Source: Paragordius varius (taxonomy: Eukaryota > Animalia > Nematomorpha). Taken from it: a stretch of 64,000 nt of DNA. Position numbers and translations under genes: made by a program. Each line of letters opens with the position of its first letter. The stretch's first letter is position 1. Positions 3,001 to 27,037 of this stretch are shown here, piece by piece. Below the pieces are notes generated by a model. That model ran no database searches. It saw only the letters and a list, made by a program, of their open reading frames with translations, and had not been told where the DNA came from. Location: assembly GCA_964247055.1 (NCBI GenBank), contig OZ176051.1, positions 13,082,001 through 13,146,000 on the forward strand, read 5' to 3'.

Positions 3001-6000
3001 GGTGCAACAACACCATCTGGTGAAACAACGCCCTCCGGTCAAACCACTCCATCAGGTGTAACGACGCCATCCGGACAAACAACTACTTGTCCGCCAAGTA
3101 TTAAAAATATTTTTATAAAATTTTAGCCATTGATATATGTGAATTGGTGACGGAAAACGGTAATTACAGTTTGAGTGACTTAGTTGGGTGCACGTCTCCC
3201 TCTTGCAAGTATATTTACCTTTCTAAAAATTTATTAGGGATGATATTTATTTGGAACGCGATGGCGACAAAATTATATGGCCAATTGACAATCAAGACAT
3301 CTTTGGTGTATTTAATCCATCTGACGAAGACCAAGAAGAATTATATCAAACTCTCACCATTCTTTTCTACCTTAAAACAAAATTCAATCTTACATTTATT
3401 GCGGATAGCAATGTAAGTCATATTACACAAACATTTATAAATATGAAATGTAAAACGTCCAATATATATGACATAATTTTTTTGAATATTTAGCTTGTAT
3501 TGGTAACAAAACCAAACATCACGGATTACAATGAAATAGCAATTTGCAGTCTTTTCATTGAAAAGGATATCTATTCTGATTGCCTGTACCCACAAGATAT
3601 TGAAGATGAGGAAATAGTATATAATATATGTTAACATTGTATAGAAACAAATCGAACAATTACAAAATGGAATCAAAATTACGACTAATGACGGCAATGA
3701 AAAAATTATCGAAAATGCTTTTGTCATTCGCGCTAACAAAGATGTTTTCGAAGTTTCTGGGGACAAACACAAGCTCAATATTGTCTTGATTGACTGTGCA
3801 AGTAAGATTCATAATGAAATATCGAAAAATATTGTTATCAGTAAATAGTTGTTTCATGCATTTATATTTGTTTTTCATATTAATACAGATGTAACGACAA
3901 CAGGTATTTCTTGATTTTATTAATTTTTTAGTTGTGACGCCAACGACGACAGGATCACCTTTCAATACAACAACAACGGCTTCAACACCTATAACCACAC
4001 CATCGGGACAAACAACTCCCTCTGGTCAAACGACTCCATCAGGTGAAACAACTCCATCTGGTGTAACTACACCATCTGGTGTTACAACGCCTTCAGGGGA
4101 AACCACGCCCTCTGGAGCAACAACCCCATCTGGTCAAACAACTCCTTCCGGCTTAACGACACCTTCTGGTGCAACGACTCCATCTGGTGTTACAACGCCT
4201 TCAGGAGCTACCACGCCATCTGGACAAACAACTCCATCAGGACAAACTACACCATCAGGAGCTACAACGCCATCAGGTGAAACTACACCTTCTGGACAAA
4301 CAACTCCTTCCGGTCAAACCACTCCATCAGGTGCTACAACGCCTTCAGGAGAAACAACGCCATCCGGGCAAACAACTCCATCTGGTCAAACAACTCCTTC
4401 AGGTCAAACTACACCATCAGGAGTGACCACACCATCGGGTGAAACTACACCCTCTGGTCAAACAACGCCGTCTGGTGAAACGACTCCATCAGGTGTAACT
4501 ACACCTTCCGGTCAAACAACGCCATCAGGTCAAACCACTCCTTCAGGTCAAACTACACCATCTGGTCAAACCACTCCATCAGGTGCTACTACGCCCTCTG
4601 GTCAAACAACTCCATCAGGTGCTACTACACCTTCCGGTCAAACAACTCCATCCGGTCAAACAACTCCTTCAGGTCAAACTACACCATCTGGTCAAACCAC
4701 TCCATCAGGTGCTACAACGCCTTCAGGAGAAACAACGCCATCCGGTCAAACAACTCCATCTGGTCAAACAACTCCTTCAGGTCAAACTACACCATCAGGA
4801 GTGACCACACCATCGGGTGAAACTACACCCTCTGGTCAAACAACGCCGTCTGGTGAAACGACTCCTTCAGGTGCAACTACACCTTCCGGTCAAACAACGC
4901 CATCCGGTCAAACCACTCCTTCAGGTCAAACTACACCATCTGGTCAAACCACTCCATCAGGTGCTACTACGCCCTCTGGTCAAACAACTCCATCAGGTGC
5001 TACTACACCTTCCGGTCAAACAACTCCATCCGGCCAAACAACTCCTTCAGGTCAAACTACACCATCTGGTCAAACCACTCCATCAGGTGCTACAACGCCT
5101 TCAGGAGAAACAACGCCATCCGGTCAAACAACTCCATCTGGTCAAACAACTCCTTCAGGTCAAACTACACCATCAGGAGTGACCACGCCATCGGGTGAAA
5201 CCACTCCATCAGGTGCTACAACGCCTTCAGGAGAAACTACGCCATCCGGTCAAACAACTCCATCTGGTCAAACAACTCCTTCAGGTCAAACTACACCATC
5301 AGGTGCTACTACGCCTTCTGGGGAAACAACGCCATCCGGTCAAACAACTCCATCTGGTCAAACAACTCCCTCAGGTCAAACTACACCATCTGGTGTAACC
5401 ACTCCATCAGGTGCAACTACACCTTCCGGTCAAACAACTCCATCTGGTCAAACAACTCCCTCAGGTCAAACTACACCATCTGGTGTAACCACTCCATCAG
5501 GTGCAACTACACCTTCCGGTCAAACAACTCCATCTGGTGAAACAACTCCTTCAGGACAAACCACTCCATCTGGCCAAACTACACCTTCTGGTGAAACCAC
5601 TCCATCTGGTCAAACAACGCCCTCTGGTCAAACAACTCCATCCGGCCAAACAACTCCTTCAGGTCAAACTACACCATCTGGTCAAACCACTCCATCAGGT
5701 GCTACAACGCCTTCAGGAGAAACAACGCCATCCGGTCAAACAACTCCATCTGGTCAAACAACTCCTTCAGGTCAAACTACACCATCAGGAGTGACCACGC
5801 CATCGGGTGAAACCACTCCATCAGGTGCTACAACGCCTTCAGGAGAAACTACGCCATCCGGTCAAACAACTCCATCTGGTCAAACAACTCCTTCAGGTCA
5901 AACTACACCATCAGGTGCTACTACGCCTTCTGGGGAAACAACGCCATCCGGTCAAACAACTCCATCTGGTCAAACAACTCCCTCAGGTCAAACTACACCA

Positions 6001-9000
6001 TCTGGTGTAACCACTCCATCAGGTGCAACTACACCTTCCGGTCAAACAACTCCATCTGGTCAAACAACTCCCTCAGGTCAAACTACACCATCTGGTGTAA
6101 CCACTCCATCAGGTGCAACTACACCTTCCGGTCAAACAACTCCATCTGGTGAAACAACTCCTTCAGGACAAACCACTCCATCTGGCCAAACTACACCTTC
6201 TGGTGAAACCACTCCATCTGGTCAAACAACGCCCTCTGGTCAAACGACTCCATCAGGTGAAACTACTCCATCTGGTGTGACTACACCATCTGGTCGAACA
6301 ACTCCTTCAGGACAAACCACTCCATCTGGTGTTACAACGCCATCCGGTCAAACAACTCCCTCAGGGCAAACTACACCATCTGGTGCCACCACTCCATCAG
6401 GTGCAACTACACCTTCCGGTCAAACAACTCCATCTGGTGAAACAACTCCTTCAGGACAAACTACACCATCCGGAGCTACCACGCCATCGGGTGCAACTAC
6501 ACCTTCCGGTCAAACAACACCATCTGGTCAAACGACTCCTTCAGGTCAAACCACACCATCTGGCCAAACTACACCTTCTGGTGTAACCACTCCATCTGGT
6601 CAAACAACGCCCTCCGGTCAAACCACTCCATCAGGTGAAAGTACTCCATCTAGTGTAACTACACCATCTGGTCAAACAACTCCTTCAGGACAAACCACTC
6701 CATCTGGTGTTACAACGCCTTCCGGAGCTACCACGCCATCCGGTGAAACTACGCCTTCTGGACAAACCACTCCATCAGGTGCTACTACACCTTCCGGTCA
6801 AACTACCCCATCTGGTGCAACAACACCATCTGGTGAAACAACGCCCTCCGGTCAAACCACTCCATCAGGTGTAACGACGCCATCCGGACAAACAACTACT
6901 TGTCCGCCAAGTATTAAAAATATTTTTATAAAATTTTAGCCATTGATATATGTGAATTGGTGACGGAAAACGGTAATTACAGTTTGAGTGACTTAGTTGG
7001 GTGCACGTCTCCCTCTTGCAAGTATATTTACCTTTCTAAAAATTTATTAGGGATGATATTTATTTGGAACGCGATGGCGACAAAATTATATGGCCAATTG
7101 ACAATCAAGACATCTTTGGTGTATTTAATCCATCTGACGAAGACCAAGAAGAATTATATCAAACTCTCACCATTCTTTTCTACCTTAAAACAAAATTCAA
7201 TCTTACATTTATTGCGGATAGCAATGTAAGTCATATTACACAAACATTTATAAATATGAAATGTAAAACGTCCAATATATATGACATAAATTTTTTGTAT
7301 ATTTAGCTTGTATTGGTAACAAAACCAAACATCACGGATTACAATGAAATAGCAATTTGCAGTCTTTTCATTGAAAAGGATATCTATTCTGATTGCCTGT
7401 ACCCACAAGATATTGAAGATAAGGAAATAGTATATAATATATGTTTACATTGTATAGAAACAAATCGAACAATTACAAAATGGAATCAAAATTACGACTA
7501 ATGACGGCAATGAAAAAATTATCGAAAATGCTTTTGTCATTCGCGCTAACAAAGATGTTTTCGAAATTTCTGGGGACAAACACAAGCTCAATATTGTCTT
7601 GATTGACTGTGCAAGTAAGATTCATAATGAAATATCGAAAAATATTGTTATCAGTAAATAGTTGTTTCATGCATTTATATTTGTTTTTCATATTAATACA
7701 GATGTAACGACAACAGGTATTTCTTGATTTTATTAATTTTTTAGTTGTGATGCCAACGACGACAGGATCACCTTTCAATACAACAACAACGGCTTCAACA
7801 CCTATAACCACACCATCGGGACAAACAACTCCCTCTGGTCAAACGACTCCATCAGGTGAAACAACTCCATCTGGTGTAACTACACCATCTGGTGTTACAA
7901 CGCCTTCAGGGGAAACCACGCCCTCTGGAGCAACAACCCCATCTGGTCAAACAACTCCTTCCGGCTTAACGACACCTTCTGGTGCAACGACTCCATCTGG
8001 TGTTACAACGCCTTCAGGAGCTACCACGCCATCTGGACAAACAACTCCATCAGGACAAACTACACCATCAGGAGCTACAACGCCATCAGGTGAAACTACA
8101 CCTTCTGGACAAACAACTCCTTCCGGTCAAACCACTCCATCAGGTGCTACAACGCCTTCAGGAGAAACAACGCCATCCGGGCAAACAACTCCATCTGGTC
8201 AAACAACTCCTTCAGGTCAAACTACACCATCAGGAGTGACCACACCATCGGGTGAAACTACACCCTCTGGTCAAACAACGCCGTCTGGTGAAACGACTCC
8301 ATCAGGTGTAACTACACCTTCCGGTCAAACAACGCCATCAGGTCAAACCACTCCTTCAGGTCAAACTACACCATCTGGTCAAACCACTCCATCAGGTGCT
8401 ACTACGCCCTCTGGTCAAACAACTCCATCAGGTGCTACTACACCTTCCGGTCAAACAACTCCATCCGGTCAAACAACTCCTTCAGGTCAAACTACACCAT
8501 CTGGTCAAACCACTCCATCAGGTGCTACAACGCCTTCAGGAGAAACAACGCCATCCGGTCAAACAACTCCATCTGGTCAAACAACTCCTTCAGGTCAAAC
8601 TACACCATCAGGAGTGACCACACCATCGGGTGAAACTACACCCTCTGGTCAAACAACGCCGTCTGGTGAAACGACTCCTTCAGGTGCAACTACACCTTCC
8701 GGTCAAACAACGCCATCCGGTCAAACCACTCCTTCAGGTCAAACTACACCATCTGGTCAAACCACTCCATCAGGTGCTACTACGCCCTCTGGTCAAACAA
8801 CTCCATCAGGTGCTACTACACCTTCCGGTCAAACAACTCCATCCGGCCAAACAACTCCTTCAGGTCAAACTACACCATCTGGTCAAACCACTCCATCAGG
8901 TGCTACAACGCCTTCAGGAGAAACAACGCCATCCGGTCAAACAACTCCATCTGGTCAAACAACTCCTTCAGGTCAAACTACACCATCAGGAGTGACCACG

Positions 9001-12000
9001 CCATCGGGTGAAACCACTCCATCAGGTGCTACAACGCCTTCAGGAGAAACTACGCCATCCGGTCAAACAACTCCATCTGGTCAAACAACTCCTTCAGGTC
9101 AAACTACACCATCAGGTGCTACTACGCCTTCTGGGGAAACAACGCCATCCGGTCAAACAACTCCATCTGGTCAAACAACTCCCTCAGGTCAAACTACACC
9201 ATCTGGTGTAACCACTCCATCAGGTGCAACTACACCTTCCGGTCAAACAACTCCATCTGGTCAAACAACTCCCTCAGGTCAAACTACACCATCTGGTGTA
9301 ACCACTCCATCAGGTGCAACTACACCTTCCGGTCAAACAACTCCATCTGGTGAAACAACTCCTTCAGGACAAACCACTCCATCTGGCCAAACTACACCTT
9401 CTGGTGAAACCACTCCATCTGGTCAAACAACGCCCTCTGGTCAAACGACTCCATCAGGTGAAACTACTCCATCTGGTGTGACTACACCATCTGGTCAAAC
9501 AACTCCTTCAGGACAAACCACTCCATCTGGTGTTACAACGCCATCCGGTCAAACAACTCCCTCAGGGCAAACTACACCATCTGGTGTAACCACTCCATCA
9601 GGTGCAACTACACCTTCCGGTCAAACAACTCCATCTGGTGAAACAACTCCTTCAGGACAAACTACACCATCCGGAGCTACCACGCCATCGGGTGCAACTA
9701 CACCTTCCGGTCAAACAACACCATCTGGTCAAACGACTCCTTCAGGTCAAACCACACCATCTGGCCAAACTACACCTTCTGGTGTAACCACTCCATCTGG
9801 TCAAACAACGCCCTCCGGTCAAACCACTCCATCAGGTGAAAGTACTCCATCTAGTGTAACTACACCATCTGGTCAAACAACTCCTTCAGGACAAACCACT
9901 CCATCTGGTGTTACAACGCCTTCCGGAGCTACCACGCCATCCGGTGAAACTACGCCTTCTGGACAAACCACTCCATCAGGTGCTACTACACCTTCCGGTC
10001 AAACTACCCCATCTGGTGCAACAACACCATCTGGTGAAACAACGCCCTCCGGTCAAACCACTCCATCAGGTGTAACGACGCCATCCGGACAAACAACTAC
10101 TTGTCCGCCAAGTATTAAAAATATTTTTATAAAATTTTAGCCATTGATATATGTGAATTGGTGACGGAAAACGGTAATTACAGTTTGAGTGACTTAGTTG
10201 GGTGCACGTCTCCCTCTTGCAAGTATATTTACCTTTCTAAAAATTTATTAGGGATGATATTTATTTGGAACGCGATGGCGACAAAATTATATGGCCAATT
10301 GACAATCAAGACATCTTTGGTGTATTTAATCCATCTGACGAAGACCAAGAAGAATTATATCAAACTCTCACCATTCTTTTCTACCTTAAAACAAAATTCA
10401 ATCTTACATTTATTGCGGATAGCAATGTAAGTCATATTACACAAACATTTATAAATATGAAATGTAAAACGTCCAATATATATGACATAAATTTTTTGTA
10501 TATTTAGCTTGTATTGGTAACAAAACCAAACATCACGGATTACAATGAAATAGCAATTTGCAGTCTTTTCATTGAAAAGGATATCTATTCTGATTGCCTG
10601 TACCCACAAGATATTGAAGATAAGGAAATAGTATATAATATATGTTTACATTGTATAGAAACAAATCGAACAATTACAAAATGGAATCAAAATTACGACT
10701 AATGACGGCAATGAAAAAATTATCGAAAATGCTTTTGTCATTCGCGCTAACAAAGATGTTTTCGAAATTTCTGGGGACAAACACAAGCTCAATATTGTCT
10801 TGATTGACTGTGCAAGTAAGATTCATAATGAAATATCGAAAAATATTGTTATCAGTAAATAGTTGTTTCATGCATTTATATTTGTTTTTCATATTAATAC
10901 AGATGTAACGACAACAGGTATTTCTTGATTTTATTAATTTTTTAGTTGTGACGCCAACGACGACAGGATCACCTTTCAATACAACAACAACGGCTTCAAC
11001 ACCTATAACCACACCATCGGGACAAACAACTCCCTCTGGTCAAACGACTCCATCAGGTGAAACAACTCCATCTGGTGTAACTACACCATCTGGTGTTACA
11101 ACGCCTTCAGGGGAAACCACGCCCTCTGGAGCAACAACCCCATCTGGTCAAACAACTCCTTCCGGCTTAACGACACCTTCTGGTGCAACGACTCCATCTG
11201 GTGTTACAACGCCTTCAGGAGCTACCACGCCATCTGGACAAACAACTCCATCAGGACAAACTACACCATCAGGAGCTACAACGCCATCAGGTGAAACTAC
11301 ACCTTCTGGACAAACAACTCCTTCCGGTCAAACCACTCCATCAGGTGCTACAACGCCTTCAGGAGAAACAACGCCATCCGGGCAAACAACTCCATCTGGT
11401 CAAACAACTCCTTCAGGTCAAACTACACCATCAGGAGTGACCACACCATCGGGTGAAACTACACCCTCTGGTCAAACAACGCCGTCTGGTGAAACGACTC
11501 CATCAGGTGTAACTACACCTTCCGGTCAAACAACGCCATCAGGTCAAACCACTCCTTCAGGTCAAACTACACCATCTGGTCAAACCACTCCATCAGGTGC
11601 TACTACGCCCTCTGGTCAAACAACTCCATCAGGTGCTACTACACCTTCCGGTCAAACAACGCCATCCGGTCAAACAACTCCATCCGGTACCACTCCTTCA
11701 GGTCAAACCACTCCTTCAGGTCAAACCACTCCATCAGGTGCCACAACGCCTTCAGGAGAAACAACGCCATCCGGTCAAACAACTCCATCTGGTCAAACAA
11801 CTCCTTCAGGTCAAACTACACCATCAGGAGTGACCACGCCATCGGGTGAAACCACTCCATCAGGTGCTACTACGCCTTCTGGTCAAACAACTCCATCAGG
11901 TGCTAGTACGCCTTCAGGTCAAACAACACCATCTGGTCAAACCACTCCATCAGGTGCTACTACGCCTTCTGGGGAAACAACGCCATCTGGTCAAACAACT

Positions 12001-15000
12001 CCATCTGGTCAAACAACTCCCTCAGGTCAAACTACACCATCTGGTGTAACCACTCCATCAGGTGCAACTACACCTTCCGGTCAAACAACTCCATCTGGTG
12101 AAACAACTCCCTCAGGTCAAACTACACCATCTGGCCAAACTACACCTTCTGGTGAAACCACTCCATCTGGTCAAACAACTCCTTCAGGTCAAACTACACC
12201 ATCTGGTCAAACCACTCCATCAGGTGCTACAACGCCTTCAGGAGAAACAACGCCATCCGGTCAAACAACTCCATCTGGTCAAACAACTCCTTCAGGTCAA
12301 ACTACACCATCAGGAGTGACCACGCCATCGGGTGAAACCACTCCATCAGGTGCTACTACGCCTTCTGGTCAAACAACTCCATCAGGTGCTAGTACGCCTT
12401 CAGGTCAAACAACACCATCTGGTCAAACCACTCCATCAGGTGCTACTACGCCTTCTGGGGAAACAACGCCATCTGGTCAAACAACTCCACCTGCTCAAAC
12501 AACTCCCTCAGGTCAAACTACACCATCTGGTGTAACCACTCCATCAGGTGCAACTACACCTTCCGGTCAAACAACTCCATCTGGTGAAACAACTCCTTCA
12601 GGACAAACCACACCATCTGGCCAAACTACACCTTCTGGTGAAACCACTCCATCTGGTCAAACAACGCCCTCTGGTCAAACGACTCCATCAGGTGAAACTA
12701 CTCCATCTGGTGTGACTACACCATCTGGTCAAACAACTCCTTCAGGACAAACCACTCCATCTGGTGTTACAACGCCATCCGGTCAAACAACTCCATCTGG
12801 TCAAACAACTCCCTCAGGTCAAACTACACCATCTGGTGTAACCACTCCATCAGGTGCAACTACACCTTCCGGTCAAACAACTCCATCTGGTGAAACAACT
12901 CCTTCAGGACAAACTACACCATCCGGAGCTACCACGCCATCGGGTGCAACTACACCTTCCGGTCAAACAACACCATCTGGTCAAACGACTCCTTCAGGTC
13001 AAACCACACCATCTGGCCAAACTACTCCATCTGGTGTAACTACACCATCTGGTCAAACAACTCCTTCAGGACAAACCACTCCATCTGGTGTTACAACGCC
13101 TTCCGGAGCTACCACGCCATCCGGTGAAACTACGCCTTCTGGACAAACCACTCCATCAGGTTCTACTACACCTTCCGGTCAAACTACCCCATCTGGTGCA
13201 ACAACACCATCTGGTGAAACAACGCCCTCCGGTCAAACAACTACTTGTCCGCCAAGTATTAAAAATATTTTTATAAAATTTTAGCCATTGATATATGTGA
13301 ATTGGTAACGGAAAACGGTAATTACAGTTTGAGTGACTTAGTCGGGTGCACGTCTCCCTCTTGCAAGTATATTTACCTTTCTAAAAATTTATTAGGGATG
13401 ATATTTATTTGAAACGCGATGGCGACAAAATTATATGGCCGATTGATCAAATAATTGTTGATAATTCTGACGACGAACATTCACATTTTTATGAAACTTT
13501 AACGATTCTATTTTACTTAAAATCCAAATTCCCGATCTCATTTATTGCCGATAGTGACGTAATTATTTATAATACTTATTTACTTTTATAATTGTTTTAA
13601 AAATATCACTATGTATCACATGGTGTCCAACAATTTTTTAGTCATGATACACTCAACATAAAAATTAACAATAGAGCATACACTACTCAGACCTTAATTT
13701 GGAAAATTATTTATCAGTACTAATATGAACATTCATTTACAATTTGCAATTTAAATACCTTATTGCTTTCGAAATTATAGTTGGTGAATTGGTAACACAG
13801 TCATTTATAAAAAAAACAGAATGTGTATAAAATAAACAATAATTAAAATGGAACAAGTTTCTTCATTTGTTGTTTTTTCCCAATGACTAACTATAATTTG
13901 AATAAGCCAGCTTTGAAATGACTGTAGTTATTTTAAAAAATGGGCTACATAAAAGGAATGCTAAGCATCTTATTTTTTTAAAGACCACCTATGATATTGT
14001 TCCCAATATAAAATGCCTTTATGTCCTATGGTTCCTTAATGTGTTTATAAATAAATGAAGCCTTACTCTCTAGATTTTTCGTTATATCGGACAAACTGAC
14101 ATATGAATTTTTTATTATGATAAAATATATTTAATATTTTGTTATCAAGAAGCAATTATTAATATACATTTTAATGTTATTCGAAATTTCCAAATCACGC
14201 CTTTTAATATTAAATATTTCACAAACGGATAAAAACCACTTAATTTATTTTATAAAATATTGTGTTGATTACCTCCAATAGATATAATAGATGAAATATA
14301 ATTTAAAACTTTACTGTGAGATGATAGTCACTACAATATAACTTATGATATAATGGTATATTCCGTTTCGAAGAGTATGTACACAGTATTTAACTGATTA
14401 ATTACCTATTTAACAATTTTAGAGCGCTTTACTTTACGCATTCCTTTTTCTTAAATGATTCGGATCGTAAAGCATGGCCTAAATATTTCAAATAAGTAAG
14501 TTATCGAATAATATAAAATCCGGGTTTGTTAATTTTAGGTTATATGAATTTGACATTAAATTTTCCGAAAATTACAAAGATTCTTTGATACCACATTTTT
14601 CGCAAATTTTTGATTTAAAGCCATAAAAATGGTCACTGTATAAACCATGACTTTTAAAATTTGGAAGATAAATTAATAACGGGAGAATCCAAATTTCGTT
14701 CGCTTAGGGGCGTAATGCTGCGGGAAGGTTGTCAGATTCCGAATTACTGTAATAATAGATTCTAGTTATATATGTTAGCATGTCATTTAATAAAGGGTCT
14801 TCGAACCAAATGTATGCTTCGATTATTATTCCTAATGTTGTTTAAAAGGATAGTCTAAAACAGTGTATCGGCAAAGAATATGCCTACAATGTTGTATTTT
14901 TAATTAAAGCTTTAATTAAATTGAATAACCAGAAAGAGAACACTGCCTTGCTATTCATGATAAAAAAAGAATATGTGACAAAGATATTTCGTTGATATTT

Positions 15001-18000
15001 ATCTAGTAAATGTATTATTATCTGTTTGAACCCATAAACAGTAATGAACTGGATCAAAAGTTACTAGAAAATCCTTAAACAGCCGTAGAGATTCTCCATT
15101 TATTTTTTTGAATTACGTTTTTAAGATTGATTATATGATTTATATATAATTGGTTTAAATCCAGTTTGGACACCTGCTATGTACTCTTGAATATTTTAAG
15201 AAGTTTAGAAATTTGTTGATGATGGCTATTATACGGTGGTTCTGACAATAATGGTGATTGTTGAAAGAAATTAGGAAGTTCTAATCGTTTGGCCAAACAC
15301 GATTTCACAAGTTTAGTTAATAAGATGTAAAGTCTTATTGGGATTGGATAATCATTGGGTCTAACGATTTGTTAATGATTTAAGGAAGATAAAAATCCTT
15401 AAATTTACAAGATGGAACTAGAATGTACTTAGAATTCAAATGAAAAGAAAAGGTCTACTTTAAGACCATCTGGATTGGTTTTGGAATTAGTAGAACCCGA
15501 TATTCAGTTGTATTAGAACTCGACAGATTCATTTAATAGCTTTATATTAGAATGTTTTTTTTGAAATGGAAAAAGGGAGATCAATATGATGGATCATTGG
15601 CACCATGATTCAGTTGATGTTGGTTAGGTTAAAATTCGATTAAAATAATTAGTGAATTTAAAAAAGTCGTAACTAGGGTTGTGCTGACCAAGTCATGGTT
15701 TGGACAATTGACCGGGTCATGACAGGTCAAGGACTATTTATTTTTTACAGCTGTTTTTTATAATTGCAAGTTTCTTTTTTGGAAGAGATAGTAGGATTTT
15801 ATTGTTTATATATATTTATTAAAAAATATGAATTAAATATTTTATATAAAATAATCGATATATAAATATTCTCTATTAAAAATATATTAATTGTTAAACA
15901 TGCATCCTCATAACATTAGTATTAAGCATCCATGTGAGTTTTCGACAAAACAGTACATAAAACAAACTAAATAAAAAAGATATTTAAAGCCACAAATTGG
16001 CAAAATATATTAATTCTAAATATGCATTAATATTATTAAAAATAAAGTTTTTCTTTAAAATTGATTGAATATTTCTAATAATAAATAAAATGTTTAAATA
16101 TTTAACCAATAAAATTCGTGACATTATTAGTCAAACACTTATTATTTGAGCATTATTTTCATAATCTCCAATATACACTTAAATATTATTACAGTTTTTT
16201 ATAGTTTCAAAATAATTGATAACAAATTTTTACTTTGACTTCGTACTTTTTATAATCAAAGCTAAATTTAAGTTATGACACTTCTTTTACAGGTTCTGGG
16301 AAAGTTTTAGCGCTCAATATATCGATTAATTTGGAACCTGTGTTGCCTTTTGATAATATAATAATGTGTTTTATTATCGCAGGTTAATAGTATTTTGTAG
16401 CTAATAGGATAAGATAGCGATTTCCTCATTTGATTTATAGTAAAAACATATATGAATCAGATTTGGCTTCGGATGTGTGTCATATGTAATTTTAATTCTG
16501 CTATTATGCTGATATTTATTAGGTCGAAATAATTGTGAATTATGAATGCTCTATATCTCCTAAAAATATCATTAATTAAAAAAATAGATCAACTGTCAAT
16601 AAAATAATTTGTTTATTAAAATCATTATAGGATTTTGGATTTGCATTTCAAAATAGTCATTTGTAGCCAACATTTTTTCACTCACAACCATTCATTGTTC
16701 AGCACATTGTGCATTCCCAAATAATATTAATTTTAAAAATATAGTTTAATCAAGTCCGAATATTTTAAAATTATGATAAAAATAAATTCTCTATATTTCA
16801 CATTTTTAGTTCTTTACTTAAATGAAGTAATCTGCAGAAATGCAATTATAGAGAATTTTTTCTAGGGATATTCAGCTAACAAAATCGCCAATATCAAACA
16901 TTCGTTAAAATGTTGGGAAAGAGGAATGTTTAGAAATTTTTTGTAATATATCATTTCTTCAATAGTGTCCTTTAACATTTGAAGTTGGTCCTTGAACGCT
17001 CAAGTTGGTCCTTAAACACTTCAAGTTGGTCCTTGAACACACATTTTATTAATCCTTCAACTTTTTTTAAGTTTCCAACTTTTTTCAATAAAATCATATA
17101 TCATTCATGTATTTTATAATTATATTTTTAATTAACATAAGGTTTATATCAATAAAAACTTTTAATCATTTGAAAACCCTACATTTTTAGTATTTTCTTA
17201 ATTATTTTAGATTTATAAGATTTTAACATTAATTCGAAAAAAGGGTTATTATACACTTTTTCGTGAAAAACATTTAAAATAATTTTGTTAAATGGAAAAA
17301 AATAAACAAAAAGTGGTTTTGAATAGAATTTTTAATTTTAAAGTAATTATACAATAAAAAAAAATTGAGTGAGAAAATAAAATAATAAATGCAAAAGTTT
17401 TGTTACAGTGGTTAAATTCCAACTTGAAGTGTTAAGGACCCACTTGATGTGTTCAAGGAAACTCTTGAAATGTCCTAGGACCAAATGGTATATTATTATA
17501 AATTACATAAATTTAATCTATTTGAAATTTATTCTATTTTGATATTATTTATACATTATTGAAAACATTTATCAATTTTTTCACCATTAATTTAATATAC
17601 AGCTTATATTGACACCAAACGACAATGGATCAAGTGATAATATCGCATTTTGCAGTTTGTTTATAGAAAAAAATATTTATTCGGATTGTCTATACCCTCA
17701 GGATATAGAAGATATGGTACTATTTTTTTAACTTTCATAGGCTGAAATTAAACAAATGAATAATGGAATCCAAATAACGTTGAAAAATGGGCAAAATAAA
17801 TTAGTTAAAAATGCGTTTATCATTCGTATAAATAGTGACGCATTAAACATATCTGGAACGAAACATAAATTAAATATAATTTTGGCCGATTGTTCAGGTA
17901 AATATATTTTATATATTTTTTTAACATATTTCTATATCCATTTTTATCAATAGATATATCAACAACAGGTATTTTTGTTAATTAATTTTTAGTTATAACG

Positions 18001-20238
18001 CCAACAACTACCGGTTCACATTTCAATACAACAACCCCTACACCGATAACCACGCCTACAAGAGTGACGACGCCATCCGGTCAAACAACCCCATCGGGTC
18101 AAACAACTCCATCAGGTGAAACAACTCCTTCAGAAACTACACCATCCGGTGAAACAACTCCTTCAGGACAAACTACACCATCAGCTACCACGTCATCGGG
18201 TGCAACTACACCTTCCGGTCAAACAACCCCATCTGGTCAAACAACTCCTTCAGGTCAAACTACACCATCTGGTGTAACTACTCCATCAGGTGCAACTACA
18301 CCTTCCGGTCAAACAACGCCATCCGGTCAAACAACTCCATCAGGTGAAACAACTCCTTCAGGACAAACTACACCATCCGGTGAAACAACTCCTTCAGGAC
18401 AAACTACACCATCCGGAGCTACCACGCCATCGGGTGCAACTACACCTTCCGGTCAAACAACCCCATCTCGTCAAACAACTCCTTCAGGTCAAACTACACC
18501 ATCTGGTGTAACTACTCCTTCAGGACAAACTACACCGTCCGGTGAAACAACTCCTTCAGGACAAACTACACCATCCGGAGCTACCACGCCATCGGGTGCA
18601 ACTACACCTTCCGGTCAAACAACTCCATCGGGTCAAACAACTCCATCAGGTGAAACAACTCCTTCAGGACAAACTACACCGTCCGGTGAAACAACTCCTT
18701 CAGGACAAACTACACCATCCGGAGCTACCACGCCATCGGGTGCAACTACACCTTCCGGTCAAACAACTCCATCAGGTGATACAACTCCTTCAGGACAAAC
18801 TACACCATCTGGTGTAACCACTCCATCAGGTGCAACTACACCTTCCGGTCAAACAACTCCATCTGGTCAAACAACTCCTTCAGGACAAACTACACCATCG
18901 CAAGCTACCACGCCATCGGGTGCAACTACGCCTTCAGGTCAAACTACACCCTCTGGTCAAACCACTCCATCAGGTGCTACTACGCCTTCAGGGGAAACAA
19001 CGCCATCCGGTCAAACAACTCCATCTGGTGAAACAACTCCTTCAGGACAAAGTACACCATCCGGAGCTACCACGCCATCGGGTGCAACTACACCTTCCGG
19101 TCAAACAACTCCATCTCCTCTAACTACATGCCCACTTGGTATTTATTCTTTCTACATACATAGATTATTGATAGATATACAAAGACATATATCATTTTAA
19201 TATAAATAATTTTTTTGCTCACCATACCTTTCTTCTTAAATATCAATATATATCTATTTATTTCTTTTTATCTTCTCTCTTTTTTATAATTAAGGTTTAA
19301 TTTGTCCTATAATATAGGCATCCAACAAATAAATTTTATTAGACAAGTGCTATTTTAAAAATATAAAATATATTTCTACACAATTAAACTAAAGTTTGTT
19401 TACTTTTATTACCGTGTACTTTCTAGCACCTTTCCTAACATTACGTTATTACAGTATGAGTAAGTATACATTGCTAGAAAGTTATTAATTATTGCCAAAA
19501 TGTAAATAGAACAAAAGGCAGTATTATTGGCTAATAAGTGAAAAAATAACTAGCCAATAATAATGCCCTTTGTTATATTTACTATTTGGCAATAATTAAT
19601 ACTTTCTAGCAACCTATACTAACTCAGACTGTATTGTATATTAAGATAAATAGATACTATTAATTGTATATACAATTGACAGTACAGTAGCGTTTCTTAA
19701 ATAACAGATGGTTAAAATTACATTTTTATTTCTTACATTTATTTAATTTAAAAAAAATTCTTTATATCATACACTACTGCATTTCGATTGGCTAACAATA
19801 ATGGGAATTGACCATCATCACAGAGCGTACATATTATTGATTTAAAATATAATCTCGTTTAGGCATACCAATATGCGATCTCGTTACAGAAAGTGGATTG
19901 TACAATTTATCTGATATCGTAACCTGTACTTCACCATCATGCAGGTTTTTTTTATTTTTTTATTGATGCATCAGATGGGTTAATTTTATCAAATAGTATT
20001 TTGCAATACAAAAGTTTAATCGTTTACCCCATTTACTTTATAATGTATTAAGTGGAGAGATTTATCTGGAAAGAACCAAAAATGCTGTTATTTGGCCATC
20101 CAAAGATAATGATACCTTCCATCTATTTTCCAGCAATGAAGATGACAGGCAACGAAAGATATATGAAACATTAACCATAATTTTGTATTTGAAAACCAAG
20201 TTCCACATCTCATTTGAGGCTGATAGCAATGTACGTAA

Positions 20239-20280
<42 letters not shown>

Positions 20281-21103
20281 TTATAAGCATAAAAGTTTTT
20301 AGCTAGTAGATTCGGGTTCATGTTGCAATAAAAACTGATAAAACCGATTCAAGCATTCAGCTGTTTCTAAAAATTTTATTTATGGATTATAAGGAAAATT
20401 TTGCTAATCAAGTAATACATAATTTAAAAGCGTTTTTTGACTTCAATTAAAGCATATAAAATGCAATCAGAACTAAAAAATAATTATAAAATTTGGTTAT
20501 ATTAGCTAGTTAATCGTTATAATTTATATCAGAAATGCATTGTATAAAAACGTTAATTTTTTTTGAATTGCGTCTTGACTTTTTACATAACTTTAACCCG
20601 TTTGGCGCGGTGGGAAAGATAAAGTTTTAAATAATATTTATCGCAAATTTTAAATTTTTATTCTAAATGTAAAAAGCTCTAAAATTAATTGGATATATAA
20701 TGTTATTTTTAATTTTTGGGATTACATGTTTATAAATAAAATTACTCAAAACTGTTTGTAATAATCTAACAAAGGAAAAAAAGGTCGTTTTTTAAAATTA
20801 AGATATGCATTAACCGGTCTCTCTATTAATATATTGCTTAAATCTCGTAACTCAAATTCAATACGCCAGAGCAAGATTTTTGAAGGGTAATAAAGCCTAG
20901 CATGTCTATGATAATTATTTAACTATGTGTAAATAGCTTGTCTTGGAGAAAAAAGAATTAATTGCTCCCGATGCTGTTGCATTCTGCACCTTATTCATCC
21001 GAAATGATATCTTTTCTGATTGTTTCCATGGCAAAGATGTAGAGAATATGGTAAGATAGTTTCTTTATAGTTTTAGCCATTACTCAAAGTCCCGATTTTT
21101 GAT

Positions 21104-21135
<32 letters not shown>

Positions 21136-24100
21136 TTTACATGAATTTAGGTACAAGTAAGACAAGATACAAAATCTATTACAATTCAAGAGAATAAGAA
21201 TGGCCAAACTATTGATCGCGTAATTAATGACGCCTTCATAGTATATGTCAATCACAAGGCAATCAATACTTTGGGTGACAAACAAAAATTAAACATTGTC
21301 ATTGCTAATTGTGAAGGTATGATTCGTACAAAATTTTTATCAATAATTTTACCAGTTTTGTTTAAATTTCGGGGAACATTGTATACGTAAGTATACCAAT
21401 CGGGATGATAACTATATATCTCAAATAGTAAATGCATCATATAACTTTTGTTAATTGCTCAATCGAAGATTCCCAAAATTATCGCATACTATTATATTTT
21501 TTTGTTTTAAGATAAAAGCATTATAGCTTAAACTTTTCAAAAAATTATTCCGTTATTTTATTTAGATTATTTCTATTGTTTGGTATAACACGGTAATAAG
21601 TATATTTTTAAAAACTCAATTTTTAATTATACTTTTTTACAAACAAAATATCATTCTTATTTTATTTTATAATATTTATTTCATCCATATCGAAAATGGA
21701 CATGGTTTTAATGCAAAAATAATTAAAAAACGAATCTCTCAACCCATTCACTATCAAAATTAGAATAATTTTAAATCTGAATAATATTAACGTTTCTCTT
21801 TAAAAGAGTGACAAACAAGGATCACAATCATTTCCCAATCAAAAAAAACGTTTTCCTAGTCAATCACGATTTGCTGGTCAATCAAATCGATTTCCCAGTC
21901 AATTAAAATAATTCCCCAGTCAATCGAATCTATTTTCCAATTGAAAATTTTCCCAGTTAACAAAAACATTGGTTTTATTTTAATGATAAATATCGAAACA
22001 AGATACAAAAAGAACTTTTAACACTATGAGCATATCAATGGGATATTATTTTTCATAAAAACATAATTGAATGACATTCTATATAAGCCACAATCATTAA
22101 TGACTTTTATGTTTTATTAATTGGATTAGTATTTATGGTTTTTGAGATATTTTTAAATATTTAAAAAAAATTATTTTATTGATTTCGCATTAATATTCCG
22201 TAACCTATAAAATCTATAGTTTCGGATAGAAAATAAATAATATACCATTTTCGCCAATCGGTTATTTCACCCTTCAAATTGCTTTTTAAAATGCCAAATT
22301 TGTCGATAAAAATTCGGGAAAAATAGCTAAATCAATTTTAAATATATAAAAATAAAAAGGATAATTTAAAAGAAAAATATATTATAAAGTCGCAAATGTT
22401 ATATCTTTAAAGTTTTAAATGACTAATTTGAGATGAAAATGGTATACTTTTAAAATTTTAGATTTAATAGGTTAGCCCCGAATATTTGTACGAACTATAA
22501 AATAAAAAAATAAATGTTTTCTTAAAAATATCTCACGAACCATAATTTCATCCACATAATATATTTCTTTTAAAGAATTCTGTTATTAATGATTGTGTAT
22601 TGGCATATATAGAAAAAATTGTCATTCAATAATTATATACTTATTAAAAAACATCCCATTAATAAGTTCATAGTGGTAAAAAGTTATTTTTATATCTTGT
22701 TTTTATATTTATCATTATAAATAAAACCGTTTTTATTGACTGGAAAAATGTTTCGATTTACTGATAAAATGTATTGAGTGACAAGGAAAATGTTTCGATT
22801 CACTGGGAAAATGTTTCGCACTGGAAAAATGTATCTATAGACTGGGAAAACGTTTCGATTGACTGGGAAAATGATATATACTATGAATTTACCATTATAA
22901 TTTTTTTAATTCCTAATCAAAATTAAAATAATATCTTTTAATAATTTGATGCCGCTGATATGCTATCTCGTTAACTTTAAACTTAACTTAAATTTTTTTT
23001 TCATTTTACATAGTTAACGAAAGATATGATTCTTTAGCGACATAAGTGTTAAAAATAAATTGTATTTTATCGATTCTATCCCACTTCAAACCTATGTTTC
23101 ATGATAATTTATTAAAAAGTAAAAACTTCGGAGCTGCATAAAAAGTCAGAAATAATTTTCTGTACAAATTTAAAATATGTTTGCCAATAGAGGTTATGGC
23201 AATCCAAATATTTTATACATATGGTACTAGTCATTTTACTAAAAACAAGAAGTCCGTGTTCTCAAAAATTATTCGCGTTTTTATTATCGCTAAAAAGATC
23301 AATTTGAAAAATATGGAATAAACTTTCTTCTGAAAAAATTATTAATAAGAATTAATTTATATTAAGAAATTATCTACTTGGCTATAAATCTCGGTTTTGG
23401 ACAAAACTGATTCCCATATTTTATAAATTGAAACCGTGATATATATTAAAAATTAATAAAATTGGAATACATTATTTTTTATAAAATTGGTTGTATTTAT
23501 AATTCGAGAATCGACAATTTTTAAGATTATTAATGGTTGAAATGCCAGCTTTATAGTTTGTATACCAAATATTATTTTTTCATAACATAAAATATAGAGT
23601 GATCGTTTGATGCACTTATTTAAAAAAGCCTTTTTTATAACGAAATTATTCTAAATAAAAATTTGGTTAATGTGGAATCTACCAAGAAAATTATAAATCT
23701 TTATATATTTAAAGTTCTATAAACTATACTCTAGTCATTTAAAAAAATACTATTTTCACACAAATTTTCATTTATCTTTTTTAACACACCATTTTACCTT
23801 AAGGTAGTATTATAGCGCGATTAAGGTATTTGAGCAATTAACCCAAATTTATAGATATGTTTAGCATTCTAGTGCTACATTTTTTTTTAATTTTATAAAA
23901 AATTCTCATCTCAATTTTTTTTGCCGCCAATTTTTTGTATAAATATTCTTAAATCGCTAAAGGAAGGCAAATAAATGTATATTATGGTTGAAATGTAAAT
24001 AACTTTAAAAAGCTTTCGTATCTTCCCAGCAATGTATCAGCTGTTCGTTTCGATCATGTTTTGGGGTCGTCCCGATTTTAAACTAAAATATAAATATATA

Positions 24101-26590
24101 ATACATGAAAAAACTATGATTAATCAATTCTAATATCGGTAGCTTATTTATGAAATAGCTCTGGATAAAAATACCCCAAAAAAGCTAATTAGGGAAAAAA
24201 AGTTAATAAAATGTTAAACATGAATATAATAGCAACATTTTTGGATATGACACTCAGCGTATTATACCAACTAAAATAAACGAAATATTGAATAATATTT
24301 TTTTTATTGTGTTTTTAGAAACTACGACAACCACTACATCCATCAGCACGCTACCTTCGCTCTCGACAAGTATTATTTTTAATTAACTACATAATTTATC
24401 TTAACTTTTGGGATTACCAAAATATATTATTAAGATTCATATAACATTTTTCCAATCTTAAGTTTTTTTGAATCATGCTTTCTTACATTTCTTATAGGAT
24501 TTTATAAAAAATTTAAGTATTCTCCTTTTTAAAATAATTTTTATGTATCAATAACAAATTTGTATTAGCTATGCCCATCTCTTCTACCACTGATATAACT
24601 GGAGAAACAACAACAGAACCTACAACACCTTATACCTCACCAGATGGACAAACCACTACTTCAGATTCACGTATATTATTTATATAAGTGTGCTTAATGT
24701 GTATAAATGTTTGAAAATAAATACGTTGGATACAAGAACATAAATTATAATTGTAGCAATAAATTTTAAATTTTATTATAGGGGTAACCGTGATTGATTG
24801 TCCTGACGAAGATAATACAAGTAAGATAATTTATCAACCAAAATTTGATTTATTCATTATATTTTCAGAATAGAAATAAAAATTTATTTTTTATTCAGCT
24901 AAAACTCCAGCTTATGATATTGGAGCCATTTGCTTTGTGGTAGAAAGCGCAGGACTTTATGACATACGACAAGAATTGAATTTACCAAAGTATATACATA
25001 GCACAATATATCGTTTTCGTTGATTCGTAAATTTCTTTTTTTATGGAACATTGTAGTCAGAAAAAATGGTGTCTTGTAAATGTCGTATTTTATTTATTAT
25101 AGAGAGGCACAATTTAAAACACCAACCTACCTCTCTAAACAAAACAACAGTGTACAATGGACGGTAGATGGTGATAAAATTTTCCAAGCTTCTGATAATG
25201 TGTACACTGCATTAGATACAAATACTCTATCCGACATTTCAATGGCTAACAAATACTTTAACCTTAAAATGAAGGCTAGAAGTGATGTATGGATAAAATT
25301 ATAATCATTTTTGTTAATCTCTGTTTTTATAATGATGACTGGTTAATTATTACTGTTTTTCTCTTTAGTTATCATTGGAAATCAGCCAAGACACCAAGAT
25401 GAACAAATTCTGTGGTTTACATTTTGGCTCTGCTGGTCTGGCTTCTAGGTGCTATGATCTCTCCATACCAAAATCTTCTACATTGAAAAAAGTAAATTAA
25501 CATTTTCCATGATATACCAAATAAAATGCCTACACATACTCATTCATATAAACTATGATGGGTAAAAAAACAAAATATTTCAAAAGAAACGATAAGGTTT
25601 GCATATTAATCGGTCTAATTTTTCATGGATAAAAAATAAGTATGATCGCAACAAATTTTAGTATCGCCTATTCATTCATTATAAAATTATTTTATAAATA
25701 TTTTTTTTCAGTTGTCGGTGGTACAAAAGGATGACCATATAGCTGTTAATGAATACTTTGAGGATAGTGTTATTCGTAAAGCTATCAGTAAGACGTTTGT
25801 TACTGAAATGTCGTTTGAAAACGCCGTTTTAGAACCAATCGCAATGGGCCAACATAAACTTGATATCATCCTTCAGAACTGCACAGATCGTAAATATTTT
25901 TTATAAAAAAAATAATTTCATCATTTTATATTAATTTGTTTAATTGACCAAACTTAAGTTGTCAAATATTCAACTCTAATTTATATTTGATACATTTATA
26001 TAGAATGCTTAGATGAAACCGTTTGGTCTAACTATACACTGCCTGATCATACCAAAGATCAAAACAAAAGTATTTGATTTTTCATTCTGTTAATGCCTTA
26101 GGCGGTGATATTGATTGTATTTATTGAAAAATTATATTTTTATTTTTTTGTAGCGGCCTACTTGGAATATGACTGTATGTGTGAGCTTGTCCAAGAACCT
26201 GGTGTTTACAACATCTTAAACTTGAATGACCGTTTACCAAAATTGGAGTATATATACATTTTATTTTATTAATCTCTTACTTTTGAAAACACATTATATA
26301 TTTGCAATAATATAGATGGATTTTTTATATGATTAAATCCATTCTCTTCTTATGTATAGAAACGTTAAATTATACCCCGAAAATAAGGCTATTGCCCTCA
26401 AGCTTATAGCCAACTTTAACCCCGTCGAAGAAAATGGCAAGATAACATATCAATTATTTAATGATCAAGAGCAAACTTATTTGAGACAATTAACTGATGT
26501 AGCAGATTACAGTATATCCGTTAATGCTGATGTAAGTGGAAACTTTTTAACAACTAAACAATATCGATTGTCATAAAAATAAATTATGAG

Positions 26591-26638
<48 letters not shown>

Positions 26639-27037
26639 GTTAAATTCAATATCATGACACCCCCGGGAACTAAATCATCTACCATTTATATAGCCGATCT
26701 AACTAGTAAAAAGATCAAATACATTGAATCAGCCGATTATCCAAACGTAATTTTTTGAGAAATATAAATGAAAATTTAATTATTATATCAATCCATAAAA
26801 AATTATTCCATCTTGTTGTAAATTTATATATTATTTGTTAAATCTGTTTTACAGATAACCGTATCACAAAGTCGAGCTGGAGTAAGCATGAATTATATGA
26901 CAAACAGTGGAGAAGAGAAATTTGCTTATTTCAAGAACTTTGTCATTACTCAAGTTGATGTTCCATCCACACCTGAAAACAAGGAAATCTTTGATGAAGC
27001 TTACCTAGTCGTATCCAAGCCAATTAAGGATTGTTAA
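1..27037 (+). CDS. Giant multi-exon mucin-like secreted glycoprotein (5' end upstream of window): (XTTPSG)n PTS exons alternating with a ~180-aa Cys-containing domain; about 5,290 aa in window
   Basis: Phase-consistent GT-AG chain: 1-22, 51-207, 295-309, 338-3097, 3127-3208, 3238-3412, 3494-3616, 3645-3801, 3889-3903, 3932-6910, 6940-7021, 7051-7225, 7307-7429, 7458-7614, 7702-7716, 7745-10111, 10141-10222, 10252-10426, 10508-10630, 10659-10815, 10903-10917, 10946-13255, 13285-13366, 13396-13558, 17603-17716, 17741-17897, 17954-17968, 17993-19138, 19863-19944, 20053-20230, 20937-21050, 21151-21316, 24319-24369, 24569-24670, 24782-24820, 24899-24989, 25103-25286, 25369-25491, 25712-25889, 26004-26069, 26154-26247, 26360-26531, 26639-26746, 26855-27037 (ends KPIKDC-TAA). 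Sum 15,874 nt. The ORF-track stops at 3126, 6939, 10140 and 13284 are the TAG of 3' splice sites. Confidence 0.85.
338..3097 (+). repeat. PTS exon 1: coding 18-nt tandem repeat, roughly 150 x (Q/E/A/V)TTPSG
   Basis: 2760 nt, phase 1-1, open frame; ORF 340..3126. Confidence 0.95.
3127..3801 (+). CDS. Inter-PTS Cys domain copy 1 (4 exons); near-identical copies at 6940-7614 and 10141-10815, partial copy at 1-207
   Basis: Spliced translation TIDICELVTENGNYSLSDLVGCTSPSCK/DDIYLERDGDKIIWPID...YQTLTILFYLKTKFNLTFIADSN/LVLVTKP...IAICSLFIEKDIYSDCLYPQDIED..I/KQIEQLQNGI...GDKHKLNIVLIDCA. Confidence 0.85.
3932..6910 (+). repeat. PTS exon 2: roughly 160 x XTTPSG
   Basis: 2979 nt, phase 1-1; 612 nt longer than PTS exon 3, matching an internal 612-nt duplication. 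Confidence 0.95.
7745..10111 (+). repeat. PTS exon 3: roughly 127 x XTTPSG
   Basis: 2367 nt, phase 1-1; ORF 7747..10140. Confidence 0.95.
10946..13255 (+). repeat. PTS exon 4: roughly 124 x XTTPSG
   Basis: 2310 nt, phase 1-1; 3-nt deletion near 11689 keeps frame. Confidence 0.95.
13285..17897 (+). CDS. Inter-PTS Cys domain copy 4 (chimeric; contains a 4-kb intron)
   Basis: Exons 13285-13366, 13396-13558, 17603-17716, 17741-17897; IAFCSLFIEKNIYSDCLYPQDIEDM and HKLNIILADC match copy 1. Confidence 0.85.
15040..15500 (-). pseudogene. Degenerate non-LTR (LINE) reverse transcriptase fragment in mucin intron
   Basis: Minus-strand motifs in LINE RT order, with stops and frameshifts: LIPKP (~15490), RP, QTGFKP (~15160), DFLVTFDPVH (~15050; compare D..KAFD.V.H). 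Confidence 0.5.
16946..17492. mobile_element. Foldback-type MITE with ~20-bp subterminal repeats (cttcaagttggtccttgaaca); related copy 55101-55556
   Basis: Inverted arms; ends TATATCATTT...AAATGGTATA. Confidence 0.7.
17993..19138 (+). repeat. PTS exon 5 (more diverged): roughly 59 x XTTPSG
   Basis: 1146 nt, phase 1-1; starts VITPTTTGSHFNTT, ends PLTTCPL. Confidence 0.92.
19452..19631. mobile_element. Palindromic Tc1/mariner-type MITE (TA-flanked); second copy ~63266-63451
   Basis: ta|cagtatgag...ttgctagaaagt ... actttctagcaa...cagactg|ta; near end-to-end hairpin. Confidence 0.75.
19863..21316 (+). CDS. Inter-PTS Cys domain copy 5
   Basis: IPICDLVTESGLYNLSDIVTCTSPSC/GEIYLERTKNAVIWP...YETLTIILYLKTKFHISFEADSN/...VAFCTLFIRNDIFSDC/...GDKQKLNIVIANC; same intron phases; mostly missed by ORF track. 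Confidence 0.85.
21827..22880. mobile_element. Foldback element with ~300-bp inverted arms and ~22-bp ttcccagtcaatcgaa subrepeats; contains MITE 22241-22446
   Basis: Arm 21827-~22130 is the reverse complement of ~22580-22880; same arms at 43777-44865. Confidence 0.75.
24899..25889 (+). CDS. Cys domain copy 6 (divergent)
   Basis: ICFVVESAGLYDI / YLSKQNNSVQW...KYFNLKMKARSD / FCGLHFGSAGLASRC / GQHKLDIILQNC; intron phases 1,2,0,0,1 as in other copies. Confidence 0.75.
26154..27037 (+). CDS. Cys domain copy 7 (C-terminal, most divergent)
   Basis: MCELVQEPGVYNI matches ICELVTENGNYSL; same 4-exon layout; terminal Cys then TAA. Confidence 0.7.
26595..26632. repeat. (TA)n microsatellite next to 3' splice site; others at ~20245-20280 and ~63453-63510, (AAT)n at ~21106-21134
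   Basis: Directly visible simple repeats. Confidence 0.9.

Follow-up and report, generated by a model that had tools for sequence, protein, structure and literature searches.

The first 27 kb of a 64,000-nt stretch of the genome of the hairworm Paragordius varius (contig OZ176051.1, hereafter C2, positions 13,082,001-13,146,000 of the forward strand; the window) hold the 3' third of one very large gene. We are moderately confident that this gene encodes a secreted mucin in which rods rich in proline, threonine and serine (PTS) alternate with folded modules, and that the protein is gel-forming or adhesive, with the modules serving as cross-linking beads. The whole gene lies on the plus strand at C2:13,034,619-13,109,037, a span of 74,419 nt with its first exon 47 kb upstream of the window, and our model of it comprises 104 exons and 103 introns (GT-AG in 103/103) and a coding sequence of 43,302 nt that specifies 14,433 aa without an internal stop. 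Apart from the signal peptide and short linkers, the model contains nothing but PTS exons and 19 modules. The genome is very AT-rich, and the species is kin to the horsehair worm Gordionus.

Architecture of the gene

The mucin character of the protein is evident from its repeats and composition. The left 27 kb of the window consist of GC-rich (about 50%), strongly C-skewed blocks alternating with AT-rich blocks, the former being open frames of 378-1,001 aa built from TTPSG[QAEV] hexapeptides. Over the whole gene, 13 PTS exons contribute 10,898 aa and 1,722 TTPSGx units, and in the complete protein Thr accounts for 27%, Ser for 14% and Pro for 13% of residues, that is, for 54% together. The first exon (73 nt; L002:2619-2691, with the start at C2:13,034,619) was judged by inspection to encode a signal peptide, and it carries a Met, a basic residue, an 11-residue hydrophobic core, a small-residue site and a phase-1 GTAAGT donor. 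Two marks of a mucin, an N-terminal signal peptide and long Pro/Thr/Ser-rich tandem repeats, are present. Pfam scans of the copy 6 and copy 7 exons and of the Gordionus C-terminal orthologue found no VWD, C8, TIL or cystine-knot domain, the upstream A-D exons, which align to the module, being left unscanned; SEA (PF01390) gave no match at E<=10 in scans of exons and of three Gordionus proteins. A literature search on Nematomorpha and mucins found nothing relevant.

The 19 module copies were located by tblastn and exon hidden Markov models (HMMs) in the window and the 60 kb upstream of it, the further copies having first been seen in a six-frame search of the same assembly; 12 are upstream, with a part-copy at window positions 1-207, and copies 1-7 form the tail. 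From 5' to 3' the gene runs from the signal-peptide exon through diverged copies A-D, which have no PTS, to 11 central units in tandem, each consisting of a module, a 15-nt micro-exon and a PTS exon of 2.3-3.0 kb, and then to copy 4, the last PTS exon and copies 5, 6 and 7. Thus, the first-pass annotation of the window, which described seven copies of a repeated domain of about 180 aa, had recognized a real repeat (of about 175 aa) and undercounted it, as the gene has 19 copies and three other loci carry the module. The features of the gene within the window, all on the plus strand, are as follows.

1-207, plus strand: eighth central copy, end of exon 3 (1-22) and exon 4 (51-207); exon 4 is 100% identical to that of copy 1 by tblastn, and the copy is part of the whole-gene model
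295-309, plus strand: micro-exon of 15 nt, phase 1-1, encoding N-V-T-T-T between module and PTS; GT-AG and open frame
3889-3903, 7702-7716, 10903-10917 and 17954-17968, plus strand: recurrences of the micro-exon in the gene model
338-3097, plus strand: PTS exon of 2,760 nt, TTPSG[QAEV]; open reading frame (ORF), tandem repeats of period 18 and multiples, gene model
3127-3801, plus strand: copy 1, exons 3127-3208, 3238-3412, 3494-3616 and 3645-3801, introns of 29, 81 and 28 nt
3932-6910, plus strand: PTS exon of 2,979 nt; ORF, gene model
6940-7614, plus strand: copy 2, exons 6940-7021, 7051-7225, 7307-7429 and 7458-7614
7745-10111, plus strand: PTS exon of 2,367 nt; ORF, gene model
10141-10815, plus strand: copy 3, exons 10141-10222, 10252-10426, 10508-10630 and 10659-10815
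10946-13255, plus strand: PTS exon of 2,310 nt; ORF, gene model
13285-17897, plus strand: copy 4, exons 13285-13366, 13396-13558, 17603-17716 and 17741-17897, intron 2 of 4,044 nt and intron 3 of 24 nt
17993-19138, plus strand: last PTS exon, 1,146 nt; ORF, gene model
19863-21316, plus strand: copy 5, exons 19863-19944, 20053-20230, 20937-21050 and 21151-21316
24782-24820, plus strand: candidate exon of 39 nt (phase 1-1) in the interval from copy 5 to copy 6, read from the sequence; the frame is open with or without it, and it is part of the whole-gene model
24899-25889, plus strand: copy 6, exons 24899-24989, 25103-25286, 25369-25491 and 25712-25889; colinear with XP_065324922.1 at every junction
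26004-26069, plus strand: linker exon of 66 nt, PTS-free, with one conserved Cys; sequence and Gordionus orthologue
26154-27037, plus strand: copy 7 and stop, exons 26154-26247, 26360-26531, 26639-26746 and 26855-27037; sequence and Gordionus orthologue

The exons of copy 1 were read straight from the sequence and those of the other copies were placed by tblastn. In the resulting coordinate-based models, copies 1-7 each have four exons, GT-AG at all introns, the phases 1,2,0,0,1 and no internal stop, in full agreement with the first reading of the window, and the phases are the same in every modelled copy, upstream ones included. Exon lengths over copies 1-7 are 82-94, 163-184, 108-123 and 157-180 nt, giving modules of 171-191 aa, and copy 7 closes with the stop codon TAA at 27035-27037. 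The stretch between copies 5 and 6 is PTS-free, and between copies 6 and 7 only the 66-nt linker exon is found, so that little or no PTS separates the last two copies, as had been noticed. In copy D the residues of the micro-exon run on directly from exon 4 with no intron between, which supports the 15-nt micro-exon. Phase-1 introns flank every module, micro-exon, linker and PTS exon, and therefore these units are interchangeable and can be gained or lost in frame. Fifty introns of the gene measure 23-29 nt and the longest measures 4,964 nt; examples of short ones lie at window positions 3617-3644 and 17717-17740, and two of 23 nt lie in copy D (L003:9454-9476 and 9591-9613). On inspection of introns by eye, in-frame stops were seen in the 81-nt intron 2 (TAG at its end), in the 24-nt intron 3 of copy 4 and in intron 3 of copy 7. 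Copy 4 has an intron 2 (13559-17602) of 4,044 nt, compared with 81 nt in the central copies; it contains no ORF of at least 60 aa and may hold a repeat or transposon. (TA)n microsatellites lie inside intron 2 of copies 5 and 7 (20243-20280 and 26598-26634).

Evolution of the array and relatives of the module

Divergence among the copies is graded, as the earlier description had it: copies 2-3 are 99-100% identical to copy 1, and the figure falls to 67% in copy 4 and 48% in copy 5, with 24% in copy 6 and 29% in copy 7. In leave-one-out tests with exon HMMs (2,903 pieces), copy 6 was recognized through exon 4, at E 0.003-0.007, with a weak signal from exon 2 (E 0.16), and copy 7 through exon 1 only (E 0.03), which bears out the remark that copy 7 matches weakly beyond its first exon. 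Membership of copies 6 and 7 thus rests on sequence together with identical phases and matching exon sizes, and for copy 7 on exon 1 and architecture. The shared motifs that had been listed hold in general, with minor changes: the N-terminal motif C-x-[LV]-V-x-E-x-G-x-Y reads C-F-V-V-E-S-A-G-L-Y in copy 6, with S in place of the motif E, and widens to C-x-[LVIW]-[VM]-x3-G-x-Y in the upstream copies. H-x8-C at the end of exon 4 is found in copies 1-4, 6, B, C and D, and its His is replaced in copy 5 (by Q), copy A (by Y) and copy 7. A census of cysteines showed that the first and the last are the only two kept in all copies; an exon-3 pair is present in all copies but copy 7, and a C-x4-C pair in exon 1 of copies D and 1-5. 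Odd counts occur in copies A and C (five each) and in copy 7 (three, with a further one in the linker).

Unequal crossing-over continues to homogenise the central array. Its 11 units differ at 0-8 positions per 805 nt, exons and introns alike (at least 99% identity), private variants cluster as blocks of identical neighbours, and the variation in unit length (3,129-3,813 nt) lies in the PTS exon. Copy 4 and copy 1 are identical over the end of the PTS exon, exon 1, intron 1 and the opening third of exon 2, after which similarity collapses, and therefore the edge of the homogenised tract lies within that exon. The flanking copies diverge stepwise under purifying selection. Among the diverged copies, the proportion of synonymous differences (pS) is 0.55-0.88, with synonymous sites near or past saturation, and non-synonymous divergence is 0.20-0.44; the ratio of non-synonymous to synonymous rates (dN/dS) is 0.19-0.32 where computable, and this low ratio places the outer copies under purifying selection.

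Three further mucin-like loci in the genome carry the module in the same order of exons 1 to 4, together with PTS exons, as found with the exon-4 profile and with a Gordionus protein as queries; only the exon-4 profile detects all of them.

C2:10.629-10.664 Mb: paralogue with the same exon order; exon-4 profile match at C2:10,628,755-10,664,064, E down to 3e-7
C2:6,383,404-6,388,808, minus strand: paralogue L008, in which a c1-like module and a PTS exon of 188 aa precede modules resembling copy 6 and copy 7
C5:6.270-6.274 Mb: paralogue with the same exon order and PTS exons

In contrast to the giant gene, these paralogues are much smaller, with PTS divided over numerous small exons and with copies that have diverged much further. 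By its size (about 170-200 aa), its four exons, its conserved first and last Cys and the H-x8-C that closes exon 4, the module of the giant gene belongs with that at C2:10.629-10.664 Mb. The copy-6-like and copy-7-like end of the gene at C2:6.38 Mb indicates that the terminal pair predates the gene duplication.

Outside Paragordius, an exon-2 profile searched against 1.84 billion representative proteins gave five matches. Two are real, both from Gordionus sp. m RMFG-2023, namely XP_065322587.1 (mucin-22-like) and XP_065324922.1 (LOC135931615, uncharacterized). The other three (P0001, P0004 and P0005) were rejected as summed 5-bit scores on unrelated Ig-like or helical repeats. XP_065324922.1 (395 aa) is 57% identical to, and colinear with, copy 6, the linker and copy 7, with hardly any gaps over eight splice junctions and with 8/8 cysteines kept; this colinear orthologue validates the exon models of copy 6, linker and copy 7, and identifies copy 7 as conserved coding sequence. 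A word search that started from a full Gordionus copy brought up LOC135929787, which has two complete copies and is 97% identical to XP_065322587.1, and therefore Gordionus has its own homogenised array. In these last two proteins, copies of a c1-type module are separated by PTS, as pieces of one array. The Gordionus PTS repeat is ETTPFGSGIDST-like rather than the TTPSGx of the P. varius gene, and the Gordionus module has a longer exon-2 region with extra cysteines. All three Gordionus relatives are fragmentary automatic gene models with no domain assigned, and RefSeq has probably split one giant orthologous mucin into at least three fragments, one of them named mucin-22-like. From these searches, the module appears so far to be confined to hairworms.

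Fold and proposed role of the module

Our searches point to a module family without a match to described ones. Nothing exceeded the Pfam thresholds for ten single exons or three spliced Gordionus proteins, and sequence searches of the PDB with Gordionus proteins gave no match; together with the Gordionus proteins being the only real relatives found by the exon-2 profile, these results uphold the novelty that had been claimed for the repeat. Below the Pfam cut-offs, matches to MHB, DUF6081, PKD_3, FkbH_N, Cu2_monooxygen and S_locus_glycop were treated as noise. The prediction is a beta-rich module whose one helix lies in the latter half of exon 2. An AlphaFold2 model of XP_065324922.1 with orthologous exon fragments had a mean predicted local distance difference test score (pLDDT) of 42, and only the copy-7-like domain (about residues 255-380), with about a dozen strands and one helix, reached 60-80. 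For LOC135929787 with exon-4 fragments, the model was confident only where the fragments aligned, and there exon 4, covered by seven of them, forms five strands (pLDDT 72-89). Mixing fragments of several exon classes was dropped, as MAFFT lays different exons over one another, an effect that we reproduced locally. Matches to lectin-like sandwiches were at noise level only.

The alternative that keeps most ground, though we regard it as possible rather than probable, is that the module belongs, as a very diverged member, to a known superfamily of jelly-roll, lectin-like beta-sandwiches and binds carbohydrate or another ligand, the candidate being Methyltransf_FA (PF12248). The first-pass annotation had seen a faint likeness to this family in one copy, and a language-model feature search with another, the c1-type Gordionus copy P0002:299-478, ranked the Methyltransf_FA cluster first, at a score of 0.87 with 114/256 shared features. 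Methyltransf_FA domains are of a similar size class and occur in secreted invertebrate proteins (PMC6003135, PMC9363628). In addition, the Cu2_monooxygen N-terminal domain appeared below threshold in Pfam, at E 0.0026 and 18.4 bits where the cut-off is 30. That domain is itself a sandwich. On the other side, scores below 0.9 in the feature search count as leads only, and 0.87 falls in the range ascribed to chance or distant relatives; the copy-6-type domain gave no usable feature match; and PF12248 (curated cut-off 24.2 bits) was absent at E<=10 from the ten exons and from the spliced Gordionus proteins P0002, P0003 and P0006. A six-frame genome scan with PF12248 was also empty, and its control gave nothing anywhere either. 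The lead names the same family as before but is no evidence of membership, and sequence does not support the suggested likeness.

Two known mucin designs place a folded module between PTS stretches. MUC16-type mucins are of similar giant size, human MUC16 being about as large as the 14,433-aa hairworm protein, and in them a disulfide-containing folded SEA module is repeated between O-glycosylated stretches, with several small exons per repeat and with homogenised repeats. The hairworm protein differs in having no SEA match and, in our model, no transmembrane anchor; its PTS stretches are each encoded by a single huge exon, and beta structure predominates in the prediction for its module, as against the alpha/beta of SEA. 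In MUC2, MUC5AC and MUC5B, PTS regions are interrupted by CysD, a domain of about 110 aa that has 10 Cys and contains a WxxW motif, and that is thought to supply non-covalent cross-links in gels. The hairworm modules likewise contain Cys and are set between PTS regions, but they are about 175 aa long with 3-6 Cys and have no Pfam match, and the protein lacks the VWD, C8, TIL and CK ends.

In the gel or adhesive that we propose, the PTS rods would be densely O-glycosylated, and the modules would be folded beads that break the glycan rods and offer sites for non-covalent (possibly lectin-like) or disulfide cross-links. A disulfide between the first and last Cys would staple the ends of the beta-rich module, the exon-3 Cys pair would form a second bridge and the exon-1 C-x4-C a third. 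The odd-Cys copies could form intermolecular bonds, and the PTS-free end clusters that contain them may be multimerisation heads, doing the job that VWD and cystine-knot ends do in the gel-forming mucins of vertebrates. Such a gel or adhesive could plausibly be part, for example, of a matrix that holds eggs in strings; hairworm females glue their eggs into strings (PMC6892959).

Several points weigh against this proposal. Cross-linking, lectin activity, disulfide pairing and a role in egg strings are all inferred. The splicing, most of all at the introns of 23-29 nt and the exons of 15 and 39 nt, is deduced solely from frame, GT-AG sites and orthology, and the copy number of an array of 3.1-3.8-kb units at least 99% identical hangs on the assembly. 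The restriction to hairworms was read from a 59-position exon-2 profile, and the word search was restricted by protein length; because exon 4 is better conserved across the paralogues than exon 2 and the large search used exon 2, this restriction is limited by sensitivity.

A different reading of the same modules is that they are inert spacers, folded knots that aid folding in the endoplasmic reticulum or protease resistance and neither bind nor cross-link. No polar pocket motif is common to every copy. In copies 5, A and 7 another residue takes the place of the His in H-x8-C, as happens to the Ser of A-D-S-N in copy A, and conservation lies mostly in the hydrophobic core and the cysteines. 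Nevertheless, the diverged terminal copies are under purifying selection, the copy 6-7 pair is 57% identical between genera, and the same pair is also kept in the C2:6.383-6.389 Mb paralogue, which is more than a generic spacer at the ends would lead one to expect; we therefore hold this reading unlikely. We give as little weight to a more radical version of the cross-linking proposal, in which the module would be a new extracellular fold born within Nematomorpha and, as an independent invention, the polymerising or cross-linking unit of gel or adhesive mucins that lack VWD, cystine-knot, SEA and CysD. Finally, it is most improbable that the array arose as an artefact of assembly or belongs to a dead gene with no expressed 14,433-aa protein, for although central units at least 99% identical are hard to assemble, the frame is open for 43.3 kb over 104 exons, unit lengths differ (3,129-3,813 nt) and private variants are shared in blocks by neighbours, as expected of a real array, dN/dS stays under 1 and Gordionus has an orthologous array with its own 97%-identical copies.

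Other features of the window and significance

Two further features of the window lie beyond the mucin gene. On the plus strand at 48100-52100 is the remnant of a Ty3/gypsy-type long terminal repeat retrotransposon, which accounts for a GC bump at 48-52 kb; its ORF pieces shift from frame to frame and show matches to a zinc-knuckle Gag region, an RVP protease, RVT_1, RT_RNaseH_2 and an integrase-like region. On the minus strand, 56710-61654 holds a multi-exon gene that combines a domain for binding cyclic nucleotides (PF00027, E 4e-5) with long exons rich in Ser and Asn and may encode an Epac/RapGEF-like or other cyclic nucleotide monophosphate-regulated protein. Rfam and tRNA scans of the window were empty.

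For domain databases, the module is a new family to define, with 19 copies here, exon-4 matches at three loci and three Gordionus models. For annotation, the case illustrates that standard pipelines split such genes into 'uncharacterized' fragments and that gene finders miss introns of 23-29 nt. For the study of array evolution, one gene displays an identical centre, graded edges and a conversion boundary within an exon. Mucins arose many times, by the joining of PTS repeats to whatever folded domain a lineage had. The architecture described here is a variant of the known design of folded domains between PTS rods and overturns nothing known on mucins; what the gene offers is an unusually clean and very large example, in which the sole folded part appears to be an undescribed and, so far, phylum-restricted module.

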